Shown here one piece after another: positions 16,741-22,200 of a stretch of DNA of 64,000 nucleotides; positions within the stretch are counted from its first letter, which is position 1, and every line of letters begins with the position of its first letter. The position numbers were made by a program, and so were the translations under genes. Where the stretch lies: assembly GCA_907165135.1 (NCBI GenBank), contig OU015569.1:4526001-4590000 (forward strand). Reading direction: 5' to 3'. Below the pieces are notes generated by a model that saw only the letters and a list, made by a program, of their open reading frames with translations, made no database searches and was not told the DNA's origin. This DNA is from Oikopleura dioica (taxonomy: Eukaryota; Animalia; Chordata).

Positions 16741-18842
16741 ATGGACGACGTCACGAAAGATCATCTTCTCGAGTTGATCGCCGGTATTTGGTCGAAGCCG
16801 GAAGAGCTTACACTTGTTCATGTTTCTTGCAAGACTACGCTAGTCGCTGTGGTGGAAGCTCTTCTGCAATTCAAGGAGGGGTTGCAGCTTTTCGGTTTGG
16901 ATGAAAACGACCAGCAGCAAATCAAAATGTGCAAAGGAAAGGTTCAGAAAACCTTCGCCCTTTTCCAGCTCAAAGTGTACAAAGCTCAAATTTGCCTGAG
17001 GATGGAGGTGGGGCCTTAATCCTAAAGACCTTCTTCACGAATAGTTAGACCTACGACTCGCAGAAATTAGAGCCTGGTTGTAATCTCGTGCTTGGAATCG
17101 GCTACTGGTCGCCAAAACTCAATGGCAAGTTTCATCGAGTCGAGACACTAGAAATGGAACATTTGATGCCCGACATTGGAAATAATCTAGGCCGTCTGAA
17201 AGTGCACAACTTTAATATCGCGAAGCGCGAGATTGAGGGTGAGGAGACCTATGATGTGCTTGCTCCAGCGAGTGAAACGCCCCTTCCAGTAAAACTCTAC
17301 TTCACGACTAATTTGGAAGAGAAGATTGGAAAAATCAATGAGCTTTTGAAGGAAGTCTTGTTTGATGACAAGCCGATCGTTATTCTATTCCGGTTTACTC
17401 GCTCGTATGATAAGGTCAAGATGCTGCTGAAAAATACACATTCAAATGTAGTGTTAATCAAACATAATGGTAATTGAGTCATATTTGAATATAGCTACTG
17501 AGATCAACGAAGACAAATTTACTCGGTGTCTTTATTGATTGCTTTCGTACAGAAACTGAAATCATTTTAGAAAGCCGGCTACTGGACATCATCACATTTC
17601 TTGGCGATCTTCTCCCAAAGCATATCGTTATTTTCGATACGGATATGAATTTGCTTCGAATTGTTGCTTACTACAAATCACGTATGACTGGATTTCCTGT
17701 ATATTGCTATACGATCACCCATGAACAATCGTACGAGACTTCCTTTTTGAAGAAACAGAAGGCAGCCGAAAAGAAGAACTCTGCAAATTTTACGAAGACG
17801 ATACGTCGCGGTGAAGATCTGAACTATACAGTCATTTATTACGATACTGAAACTACTGGGAGGGCGAGAGACTGTTCTATCTGTGAGATCGCTTGCTGGG
17901 CTCAAGAGCTCAACAAGTTTGAATGTCCGAGTGTTTACAATCAAAACCATCGAGGGCCAAATGTATTCTATGAGCTCATGGTTCCTGATAGAAAATTCAG
18001 TGCAGGGGCCTCAAAAGTAAACGGGATAAAAAGGGAGGGAAAGACAGGACTCAAAGGAAAGGATTTCTAAAGTGATGCTAAGTGAAAAGAAATTTATATT
18101 AAAAAACAGATGAATTCCATTTCAGTCAGAGGGAAAGTTCACAAACACGTCCAATCCGCGAACAAAGCGATGGGCAAGCTTTGCGAATGGCTCGAGGGTT
18201 TCTCAAAGAAAGTCGTTCTCGTGGCTCATTTCGGAACAGGTTACGATCATCCGATTCTCATCCGTCAAATGGCGCGAGCAGGCTTGGCAGAGCGCTTCAA
18301 GAACTCGATATATGGGTTCTCAGATACGATGATTCCGCTGAAGCGAACAATGCCAAAGCAAAAATTAAAGTTGACTGTGCTTGGTGAAGAGTTTATTCCA
18401 GGTTGGAATATGTACGAAGGAAAAGCACATTCAGCCCTATTCGATGTTTGGTGCATGTTGATGGTGTTCAGGAAAGGCTTTCGAACGCAAAAATCAAGGA
18501 AGAAAGCCAAGTTGACTTTCGATTCATTCATCAAGCCCATAAAGGATGCAAGGAGTTTTGTTTTCTCCCTACGACTTCACGAAGAAAGTGGTCTTCATCG
18601 GTAAACTAGAAAACGACACATCCGTCCTTCCAGCTGGACATAAAGCGCTGGTCGATAACGGAGTGATTTCATTCGACATCGCTTCGAAGATTTGCGAAGT
18701 GCCAACCCAAGAAATCATTAAACTTTCAAGAACGAGCACATTACAGAAATTAACAGAACTTCTGCATCCCCTTGTAATTAGAATTTCAACTGCCAATGAG
18801 ATCTCATCGAAGATTCGAGAGTATTACCTCAACAATGACTGA
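16741..18842 (+). CDS. XPF/ERCC4-like helicase-like module fused to a DEDDh (DnaQ/TREX/PML-type) 3'-5' exonuclease
   Basis: Introns at ~17008-17048, ~17448-17494, ~18057/62-18109/24 (non-GT donor) and a 55-nt intron near 18560-18610. XPF-like: EKIGKINELLKEV..PIVILFRFTRSYDKV and LGDLLPKHIVIFDTDMNLLRIVAYYKSRMTGFPVYCYTITHEQSYE. Exonuclease motifs YYDTETTG, AHFGTGYD, HSALFD, then a C-terminal LVDNGVISFDIASKI helical segment. Confidence 0.8.
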
Positions 18843-18890: not shown

Positions 18891-19114
18891 ATGGATAGTG
18901 AAAAGCCAAAAAGTCCACCGAAAGGTTTGAAGCCATGCTGTGCGTGTCCAGAGACTAGAAAGCCCCGAGATGAATGTTTCATGGCTTCCGGTAAGATTTT
19001 TTAACTGTGAGGGGCATAATCTTTAATTTATCTCTAGAAAACGGTGCTGAAGACTGCAAGGAACTGATTGAAGCCCATCAGAAGTGTTTGAGAGATCTTG
19101 GTTTCAAAGTTTAA
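18891..19114 (+). CDS. COX17: Cytochrome c oxidase copper chaperone COX17
   Basis: Two exons: MDSEKPKSPPKGLKPCCACPETRKPRDECFMAS|ENGAEDCKELIEAHQKCLRDLGFKV* (KPCCAC plus twin CX9C). Confidence 0.96.
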
Positions 19115-19220
19115 CTGTCTCCTTCTGAATGTTAATTTATCTCTAGCAGTGCTAGTTTTACTATGACTGAAATAAATATCTGAATGAAGTTGAATCTGAG
19201 CGTTTTATTACTAGAAATTG

Positions 19221-22200
19221 ATGTCGGACTTTGAAGACGAAGACTATGTCGCGGATGGGGAAGAAAATCTTCTTCCTTGGGAAGATCCACCAAATCCATT
19301 CGACGACAGCCCAGATGAATGCGAAGAACAAAAACCTCAAAAGAAAAAGAAAGTTCAGGTGAAAACGACCAAATCGCAGCCCACAAAATCAAAAGCAGCA
19401 AAAACAACGAAGAAATCAAAGGCAAACACGCAAGGAGATGAACCACCGCCCCCAATGCCGTCGAAAGCGACAAATATAAAAGAAGAAGACATTTACGTAG
19501 CCCTAAAAGAGCACTTCGGGCATCCGGGCTTTAGGTCGTCTATTCAAGAAAATGCGGTGAAAGAGTTGTGTCTAGGTGATAGGAATGTGGTAGAAATAGA
19601 GAGTTCTTATTCGATTATTGTAATTTTGCAAAATCACAAATCAGGGACGCCTTCGTACTTCTCCCTACCGGCGGTGGAAAGTCTCTGATTTATCAACTGC
19701 CGGCCATGCTTTACCCTGGTATTTCCATCGTCATATCGCCCTTGATCGCTCTGATTCAAGATCAGCTTCAGTCCCTTCTCGCAAAGGACATCAGAGCCGA
19801 ATCCATCAACTCCAAACTCTCTACAGAGGAGCGCAAGGCTATTATGGATGATTTGTACTCTGGTGCTCCTAAAACTCGTATTCTCTACGTCACCCCCGAA
19901 CAAGTCCAAACACAACGGTAGTTTATTTTGATCCTCGTCTTTCTTTAACTGTTATTTAGCTTCATCAAGCTTGCACGGTGGATGAATGCTCGCTGTTTAA
20001 TCCACTTAGTGGCAATAGATGAGGCGCACTGCGTGTCCCAGTGGGGTCACGATTTCCGACCAGACTATCTCAAGCTCGGCCTTCTTCGTGAGCTCGTCCC
20101 AAACGCTCGTTTCGTCGCTTGCACTGCCACTGCTACCAAAAAGGTCGAAGAAGACGTTATTCGAATTTTGAAGATGAAGAACTGCGCTGTTTTCCGCACG
20201 GGCATCACGCGCGAGAACCTTTATTACGATGTGAAGATGAAGGATATCCTCCCAAATCCACATCGCCACTTGGCTAATTTCGCAAAAGAGTGTATTGGCA
20301 AGCTTCAGCCAAACGGAAGCTATGAAGGCGCGGGTATAGTCTATTGCTTCCGAAGGGACGACTGTGAAGAAATCGCCGTGTCTCTGACTCGTCTCGGCGT
20401 TGAATCAGAGCCCTACCATGCCGGATTGAAGCCAGAAACAAGGACCAGAGTGCAAGAAGACTGGACCGAGGGTCGCGTTCCCGTCATTTGCGCCACTATC
20501 TCTTTTGGTATGGGTGTTGATAAAGAGAACGTGCGTTTTGTCGCTCACTGGTCCCTTCCGAAGTCGCTTGCTGGATATCTTCAAGAGTCCGGTCGAGCAG
20601 GGCGAGACAACAAGCCCTCAAAATGTCGATTGTACTACTCACGTGAGGAACAACGCTCGCTCATATTTATCATGAAGAAACCGCTTTTCTGGAAGAAGAA
20701 AGACGCGGGAAACGCCGAACAGAACAAAAGAAAATCATGATCCAGCTAAGACAGTTCGAATCAGTCACAAAGTACTGTGAGGGAACAGATTGTCGTCATA
20801 AGACAATGGCTAAGTTCTTCGGCGAAAACACGGACATCTGCAAAACAAACTGCGATGGATGTACAAATAAGACACAAGTAGCCCGGGAACTCGACTGCAT
20901 GGGCAAAGTTGGCAGCTGCAAGACCTACACGAAGATCAGCGAGGAGGACGACAATGATGCCTTTGCAGAATATAACCCGGACATTTACGGGGGTCGGCGT
21001 GGAGGGTATGGCTTCGAACGACCTGACGAGCCTTCAGAAGCTTTCAAAGACGAGGTGGAAAACGGGACCGGAACGACTTCCCTCATTCTCAACGAGTTCA
21101 AAAAGCGACGCGCAGCTCAAGCAAAACTGTCAATCCCGGAGCAGAAAAAGGCGAAGGAGGATGAAAAGGCGTTGCTTTATGTTGGCTTTCCAGATGATAC
21201 TCCACTCATTGACCCAGCGAACCAAAGGTTCGGATCTAAAAGACATTTTTTATTATTAGAATTAATAAACCGATTTTTAAATCCGCAAATCAGAGTTAAC
21301 GGTCTCGGCTGGCGAGTGCGATCTGCCTGTTACGATACCCTCAAAGAATGTCTGGAAACAAACCACGTGAACTTTTACATAGAAACTCCCGAGAAGGCGG
21401 CGCTTTGTGATATCGAAGTACGAGTGGCGGCAAGTAACTTGGAAAAGTTCATTTTCGACAGTGCCCGTTCGAAGATATCTTACAAGGCCGCGATTGTGAA
21501 CAAGTAAGAAGGTTTCTAGAATATATGCTTCTTAAAAACAATTTAGACGAAAGGAAATAATGCTGACCACAGAGAACTTTGAATTAGCCGAGGCATTCCG
21601 ACTTGAACAGAAGAAAGAGGTCAAAGCAAAAGCTTGCCCTGTAGCGTCAGGCATGTTCCAGAGTGCCGCGAACCTTATTTCCTCCTCGGACGACGAATCA
21701 TCCAAAGAAGACATTAAAGATCAACCTTCTACATCAAAAGCAGCTCCTTTAGTCAAGGCTCGCACTCTCTCTTTCGTTTGACTTTCTGCTTGTTTTGAGT
21801 GCGACCGAAAGTCTTCGCGAAAGTCAAGCCCAAATCCACTATGTCAAAGCTGAAAGAGCTGAAGAAATCGAAGCCAGTCAAACTTAACTCTGCTGAGCAA
21901 AGCCTGCTGTCAAAATATCTGAAACCCAGACCTCGATCTCCGGAGCCAAAAGTGGAACCGAAAGTAGAGCCTCTGCCGACAGAAGCGCCAGAACCTGATA
22001 AAGAAACGCCCGAACCTGAAAAGCCTGAAACACTTCCTGTGCCTTTAAGTATTGATGAGCAGACAGTTGAAAATGTAAATAGCATAACGGCCAACATCAA
22101 GCTTAAAAATATCTAGGAAACTGAATCAAGCAAGGAAAACCATGTCTTCGTCGTTCCAGCGATTCCGGTTCTGGGAGCCCGTAAGTTGAAGCAAAGTTTC

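Follow-up and report, generated by a model that had tools for sequence, protein, structure and literature searches.

An XPF RecA2-like lobe joined to a predicted DEDDh 3'-5' exonuclease in a protein of larvacean tunicates

Can the helicase-like module of the repair endonuclease XPF be separated from its own nuclease and placed in front of an unrelated one? The question is raised by a gene in a 64,000-nucleotide stretch of the Oikopleura dioica genome (contig OU015569.1, positions 4,526,001 to 4,590,000; hereafter the window), where a eukaryotic gene of five exons with short introns runs on the forward strand from start to stop codon at 16741..18842 and encodes a product of 605 residues. An earlier reading of these letters alone, made without database searches (the sequence-only reading), had proposed that the spliced protein fuses an XPF-type scaffold to an intact DEDDh 3'-5' exonuclease that stands in place of the ERCC4 nuclease. 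XPF is a structure-specific 3'-flap endonuclease in which a RecA1-helical-RecA2 module is followed by the ERCC4 nuclease and HhH2 (PMC7048804). Until now that helicase-like module has been known in one setting alone, as the regulator and partner-binding platform built into the ERCC4 endonuclease. The answer that we consider likely is that the gene encodes a three-part larvacean enzyme: an N-terminal region with a RecA-like domain that is free of ATPase motifs and descends from XPF RecA2, then a DEDDh exonuclease, then a helical tail. The corresponding NCBI entry is an unnamed product without a precomputed Pfam domain, and the domain annotation given here is new information.

The likeness to XPF resides in the RecA-like domain (aa 171-303; 17292..17791, + strand, as are all features of the gene described below). 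Profile comparison places this domain as homologous to the XPF helicase-like module, specifically to its RecA2 lobe, stripped of the two inserts that RecA2 carries in XPF (345-377 and 441-550; PMC7048804). The sequence-only reading had pointed to a 46-residue segment, aligned to human XPF 570-615, and to a shorter resemblance upstream of it. All of the peptides that it quoted are located in the window translation, the 46-residue segment (LGDLLPKHIVIFDTDMNLLRIVAYYKSRMTGFPVYCYTITHEQSYE) at aa 240-285 in exon 3 (17600..17737) and KIGKINELLKEV at aa 181-192 in exon 2. When exon 3 alone is searched against the PDB with phmmer, XPF 569-633 is the top match at a marginal E of 0.07; when the query is a profile built from six sequences of five species, limited to their N-terminal halves, XPF is the sole significant match (E 7e-6), and other helicases are absent even at E < 10. 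Alignment of the family N-half by hhalign to 34 non-redundant XPFs gives a probability of 95.6% and P 1.1e-8 over 81 columns, pairing O. dioica aa 219-299 with roughly 555-632 of human XPF. A smaller XPF set gives 95.1% in local and 96.3% in global mode, with P between 1e-8 and 3e-8 across both sets. The XPF genes in these alignments were drawn from metagenome contigs by the pattern VERKS..DLIGS, arthropod XPFs were added, and the fetched XPFs were verified by Pfam ERCC4 scores of 88-99 bits and an E of 9e-152 to human XPF. By the PDB profile and by hhalign, the resemblance of the 46-residue segment to human XPF is above chance, and a significant XPF profile match does precede the exonuclease.

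The upstream resemblance also falls where it should. Scored alone, aa 172-218 match the 'PKW helix plus strand' with which RecA2 begins (P 0.0068), collinear with the main XPF match, and none of 150 column shuffles attains the score of 23.6 (null 12.9 +/- 2.1). Compared with other SF2 (superfamily 2) lobes, XPF comes first by Z, and the ESM Atlas, an independent line, lists plant XPF (UVH1) together with Helicase_C clusters. Active SF2 helicases differ from the larvacean protein in that it has neither Walker A nor DExx nor the arginine finger of motif VI: a regular-expression scan found no DExx motif in any family member; there is no Walker A in the N-terminal or RecA-like part, the sole string of that kind (GIKREGKT, in the O. 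dioica protein) lying inside the exonuclease domain; and the motif VI position, LLRIVAYYK, resembles the degenerate FVRQLEIYR of XPF and is without the arginine finger. The family-invariant D242 aligns with XPF E572, a residue that has been mutated to probe the SLX4IP interface; we offer this correspondence purely as a lead towards a putative interface of SLX4IP type.

A linker of about 10 residues separates this lobe from a domain of the DEDDh 3'-5' exonuclease type, in the TREX, Plex9 and PML-like group (aa 315-505; 17825..18466), which is the most conserved part of the family. All five DEDDh residues are kept in O. dioica. Exo I (D321-x-E323) lies in YYDTETTG (from aa 319; motif at 17843..17851), its D and E are invariant, and it aligns with FDLETTG of 9l85; the Exo II aspartate, D432, lies in GYDHPIL (from aa 430; 18245..18247) and is placed by the family alignment; Exo III (H493-x4-D498) is the HSALFD that begins at aa 493 (18428..18445), aligns with AHDALED of 9l8b and is found in every family member that reaches that region. 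The intact exonuclease that the sequence-only reading saw directly after the XPF-like part is thus borne out by its catalytic residues and by the shortness of the linker. Across the family the domain bears the signatures FDLETTG, EIACW, ASKVNGI, VRG, HNG..FD.P.L, DT and AHSALFDVW. Against the PDB, the exonuclease family profile matches 9l85, 9l8b and Plex9.1 (9mrd/9mrc) at E 1e-21 to 2e-18, TREX2 at 1e-11 to 1e-10, TREX1 at ~1e-9, Exuperantia at 2e-7 and Pol III epsilon at 4e-3, and the best Foldseek matches are Plex9.1, TREX1 and TREX2. Motifs and profile together class the protein as a member of the TREX/Plex9-like DEDDh exonucleases, and the same comparisons put it nearer to the PML-like and Plex9 enzymes than to TREX, RNase T or Pol III epsilon. 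In four relatives (P0001, P0008, P0009 and P0011) the Pfam family RNase_T (PF00929) scores over its cut-off. As to the replaced nuclease, Pfam finds no ERCC4, the domain marked by the motif GDXnERKX3D, at E <= 0.1 in the O. dioica protein or its relatives, in agreement with what had been proposed; no HhH domain is matched by Pfam in the whole proteins or the tails, and the whole-model Foldseek list contains no isolated HhH2 chain, the tail not having been queried by itself against PDB sequences.

On the evidence of protein searches, the fusion of XPF-like lobe and exonuclease is limited to larvacean tunicates. When 1.8 billion representative proteins were searched exhaustively with exon 3 by phmmer, just seven proteins came back, among them P0001 (561 aa), in which the match spans the junction between the XPF-like part and the exonuclease. 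P0008 (672 aa), P0009 (510 aa) and the partial P0011 (337 aa), along with many exon fragments of a P0008-like species, came from word-indexed searches of 5.8 billion proteins. Across the two collections only about five diverged members carry the N-domain, all of them in the larvacean group, which upholds the earlier claim that the protein is lineage-specific. Family members all share the order N-terminal region, RecA-like domain, exonuclease, helical tail, and the relatives are 24-34% identical overall to the O. dioica protein. Four of them carry the same fusion as continuous open reading frames (ORFs). P0008 is a single ORF on contig L001, whose first letters, CCGATTTCGATTGTCTAACAG, match the spliced leader in its 3' part, as seen in the window in loose read ends at 19213; because it opens with spliced-leader sequence, L001 represents a cDNA of an Oikopleura-like animal, mature and trans-spliced. 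In genomic fragments of the P0008 species the sequence reads through an intron near the position of intron 3 of the window gene. Outside the larvacean group the nearest proteins, from mussels, oyster and lacewing, match the exonuclease only (E 7e-8 to 8e-3). The family profile was also tried on the 5.8-billion set as a route to XPF relatives; all that it brought up was family members and exon fragments.

Two of the relatives invite comment on their N-termini. On the contig that encodes P0009 (L005), an ORF at 2-355 in another frame meets the main ORF (303-1835) at a run of A; this is probably a homopolymer frameshift, in which case the N-terminus of P0009 would gain ~100 aa, with the 'LLIVGL' motif of its relatives among them. 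On the contig of P0001 (L002) the frame stays open for 44 codons 5' of the called ATG (297-428; KELLESLLDKFKNDKIILAGLN...), and the N-terminus of P0001 in the database is probably truncated.

Both halves belong to a single gene, and in larvaceans they are expressed on one mRNA. The XPF-like segment and the Exo I motif lie within a single unbroken exon, exon 3, so that the key junction is independent of any splice. Intron 2 (17470-17570, GT-AG), which interrupts the RecA-like domain, is seen spliced in RNA, a seawater metatranscriptome contig linking 17468 to 17570 and hence exon 2 to exon 3; this join, and the relative's spliced-leader cDNA that carries the entire fusion, support the single transcript that had been predicted. 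The exons at 16741-17007, 17049-17469, 17571-18056, 18126-18471 and 18545-18842 give a spliced translation that is exactly NCBI protein P0010 (Oidioi.mRNA.OKI2018_I69.XSR.g14561.t1; O. dioica OKI2018_I69, X-specific region). Intron 3 (18057-18125), which interrupts the exonuclease domain, and intron 4 (18472-18544, 73 nt) are both annotated with non-canonical GA-AG ends and share an identical opening hexamer, GAAAGG; they are placed by the annotation, and relatives align across them without gaps (GIKREGKTGLKVRGKVHKHV vs GIKKAGKRNLMVRGKKHFNV). For intron 4 the annotated choice is the sole one that gives P0010 with an AG acceptor, and the resulting exon 4-5 join fits the relatives (LFSPYDF vs YFTPENF); an alternative GA-AG intron 4 of 40 nt, further downstream and derived by hand from the sequence, is possible. 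A canonical GT donor at 18017 was considered for intron 3 and dropped, as relatives and annotation show the SKVNGIKREGKTGLK stretch to be coding.

Intron 1 (17008-17048, GT-AG) is retained in a metatranscriptome contig that spans 16960-17111, and an acceptor for it lying 18 nt further downstream was dropped in favour of the annotated 605-aa model. The contig at 16960-17111 is identical to the window, and another contig of that run, ~5% diverged, is spliced at intron 2; the sample may hold two Oikopleura populations, or DNA carry-over. The RNA-seq runs X6-X8, filed under this species name, come from a lineage ~8% diverged and have few reads on the gene, and the O. dioica reads of this diverged lineage fall only on exon 4 and on the neighbouring gene.

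Set beside known systems, the larvacean protein resembles each of them in one part. With XPF and its counterparts (ERCC4, Rad1, MEI-9, UVH1) it shares a region, aa 171-303, that is homologous to RecA2 over a stretch opening with the 'PKW' helix and the first strand and closing with the last strands and an alpha20-like helix; in both the ATPase motifs are missing and a nuclease comes directly after the RecA2-type lobe. Unlike XPF, it lacks both RecA2 inserts, its RecA1 and helical domain are undetectable, and its nuclease is an exonuclease of unrelated fold. Also unlike XPF, it has no ERCC4 and no HhH2, and so it has no recognisable module for ERCC1-type dimerisation and is not a strict member of the XPF family; rather, it carries what we take to be an XPF-derived domain. 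The best profile and fold matches to aa 315-505 are the PML-like and Plex9 enzymes (9l85, 9l8b, 9mrc/9mrd) and then TREX1 and TREX2, all with DEDDh conserved, but these are single-domain proteins or, in PML, stand at the end of a TRIM protein, and none has an XPF-like N-domain. The nearest exonucleases outside larvaceans are invertebrate 'Exonuclease domain-containing proteins' (E 7e-8 to 1e-5), such as the Mytilus protein P0014, which has the same order of exonuclease and then helical tail (a Mutator transposase, an Exu-like exonuclease and PML_C) but whose N-terminal partner is a transposase and not an XPF-like lobe. The occurrence in this Mytilus edulis protein of the exonuclease module together with a Mutator-like transposase domain and PML_C suggests that the unit of exonuclease plus tail travels with transposons or derives from them.

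An SF2-type scaffold combined with a DnaQ-fold exonuclease is also seen in Staphylococcus aureus DinG (a DEDDh exonuclease with an SF2 helicase; PDB 8zef, which is among the whole-model Foldseek matches). WRN, a DEDDy exonuclease with a RecQ helicase, is another such combination. In DinG and WRN the exonuclease is N-terminal, the opposite order, and the helicase is two-lobed and has its motor motifs; unlike XPF, neither has specific homology to the scaffold part of the larvacean protein. No description of an XPF-like module fused to a DEDDh exonuclease was found in the literature searched, as the sequence-only reading had supposed, and the combination appears to be new, although built from known domains.

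What might such an enzyme do? Its active site is complete and of the two-metal type, and it is predicted to be active; by analogy with TREX1, TREX2 and Plex9.1, the exonuclease would remove nucleotides at DNA 3' ends. In XPF, the RecA2 lobe is packed onto both RecA1 and the helical domain, and most of the SLX4IP contacts come from it (PMC7048804, PMC12804970). The XPF-derived lobe would, on this model, be a docking or regulatory module rather than a motor, and it could recruit the exonuclease to specific DNA structures or to partner proteins. The outcome would amount to an exchange, in which XPF gave up its ERCC4 endonuclease and HhH2 for an exonuclease. As to pathway, two readings stand side by side. 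One is the restriction of retroelements or stray DNA, taken up below; the other is a possible role in the trimming of 3' tails or flaps during microhomology-mediated end joining (MMEJ) or single-strand annealing (SSA), which is attractive because O. dioica lacks canonical non-homologous end joining (NHEJ) (PMC6635534, PMC13746493); in the larvacean lineage, the absence of canonical NHEJ is accompanied by extreme genome rearrangement (PMC6635534, PMC11067885, PMC13746493). A stronger version, to which we give little credence, is that larvaceans have rebuilt the 3'-tail removal step of MMEJ and SSA, with the XPF-derived docking lobe carrying a TREX-type exonuclease in exchange for the ERCC4 endonuclease and still reaching the partners of XPF or DNA junctions. 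Were that so, non-homologous 3' tails would be chewed back and not clipped, which could add to deletion-prone repair and to the compact, scrambled genomes of Oikopleura. The reuse of the RecA2 lobe ahead of an unrelated and apparently active 3'-5' exonuclease would make that lobe a portable module, and the protein is a testable candidate for an unusual activity in DNA-end processing or genome defence.

Several observations weigh against the XPF assignment and the architecture as we read it. The margin of XPF over other SF2 lobes is modest. AlphaFold2 (AF2) models, built on alignments of six sequences, are poor overall, with a mean predicted local distance difference test score (pLDDT) of 42-45 for the whole protein and the N-half; their usable parts are aa 177-280 and the exonuclease core, and only aa 177-280 reach a pLDDT of 65-78, as a compact domain of alternating strands and helices. 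In Foldseek, XPF ranks below KaiC and further RecA-like folds when the N-half is the query, and the matches (SecA and DEAD-box lobes as well as KaiC, with XPF at E 1e-3) speak for a RecA-like fold only; the structural check envisaged in the sequence-only reading therefore came out as expected for the exonuclease half, which is DnaQ-like, whereas the N-half is RecA-like with XPF not at the top. Pfam sees no domain before the exonuclease in single sequences, and the exonuclease domain of the O. dioica protein itself lies under Pfam cut-offs, its membership coming by way of the family profile. Finally, aa 1-170 carry no XPF, SF2 or other signal, whether by the PDB profile or by hhalign with two alignments, and a likeness to XPF RecA1 or the helical domain, looked for there by the same means, was given up. 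With no XPF signal in that region, a complete XPF scaffold is not demonstrated and about one lobe is: of the scaffold originally claimed, the RecA2 lobe stands, and RecA1 and the helical domain are not demonstrated. It could be argued from here that the N-domain is no more than a degenerate SF2 or RecA-like lobe of generic kind, similar to XPF by convergence or shared fold. We regard this as improbable, since the PDB profile matches XPF and no other helicase at E < 10, hhalign to XPF reaches 95.6%, a second piece (aa 172-218) is collinear with the first, XPF leads by Z, and the shared motif is that of the degenerate helicase motifs V-VI of XPF, without the arginine finger. Far less credible still is an annotation artefact in which two adjacent genes have been merged wrongly. 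Such an error might be suspected from the unspliced intron 1 in the metatranscriptome contig and from the non-canonical GA-AG introns 3 and 4, which are without read support, but it is largely refuted by the one open exon that holds both the XPF-like segment and Exo I, by the exon 2-3 join in RNA, and by the continuous ORFs of the same fusion in four relatives, one of them on a spliced-leader cDNA, and we have rejected it.

The remaining alternatives accept the fusion and differ over its origin or its use. The protein might be the larvacean orthologue of XPF, with ERCC4 and HhH2 replaced, and O. dioica would then be without a canonical XPF-ERCC1 endonuclease. The join between lobe and nuclease does sit where the nuclease of XPF itself starts, and no O. 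dioica XPF is found among the best 120 of 1983 XPF matches or in the literature searched; however, those best 120 matches are all arthropod, so that the absence is no evidence, and the literature is silent on the matter. Moreover, neither RecA1 nor the helical domain can be recognised, for which a fragment captured from a duplicate is the better fit, and we think orthology unlikely. We take more seriously, while still holding it short of probable, the view that the same architecture does another job, the degradation of retroelement cDNA or stray DNA in genome defence, after the manner of TREX1 and of the Plex9 and PML-like exonucleases of fish, and not the repair of double-strand breaks, with the XPF-like lobe a mere adaptor. 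Its nearest solved relatives (9l85, 9l8b and Plex9.1; E 1e-21 to 2e-18) match well above TREX1 and TREX2, Plex9 and PML-like exonucleases have been linked to the restriction of retrotransposons (LINE-1; PMC10123124), and the mussel protein P0014 holds the same exonuclease module beside a Mutator transposase and PML_C. A module derived from XPF hints instead at a DNA-repair context, to which a RecQ-like helicase gene flanking the locus adds a weak circumstantial link.

The N-terminal region (aa 1-170; 16741..17291, including intron 1) has an AF2 pLDDT of 20-40 and is poorly conserved in the family alignment except for a 'hydrophobic strand plus GL' motif, whose pattern (hhhhGL) recalls by eye the GLG of XPF and may be followed as a lead only. 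The C-terminal tail (aa 540-605; 18642..18839) is conserved in the family and forms helices in the AF2 model. The sequence-only reading had called it a PML-C-like helical tail, of which the helical character holds, with the specific kinship no more than a candidate: Pfam finds no PML_C (PF25244) at E <= 10 in four family tails, and hhalign of the family tail against two PML_C-bearing tails gives a weak match (P 0.0024, probability 12%).

Two genes follow on the same strand. A two-exon COX17 copper-chaperone gene at 18891-19114 begins 49 nt past the stop codon of the exonuclease gene, with a Pfam COX17 match on both exons, and the pair looks like an Oikopleura operon arrangement. Beyond it lies the RecQ-like helicase gene (19213-20740), with DEAD and Helicase_C domains. 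Spliced-leader sequence (...TTTTTGAGTCCGATTTCGATTGTCTAAC) occurs as a loose read end just 5' of 19213 in three RNA runs, which indicates a trans-splice acceptor there.

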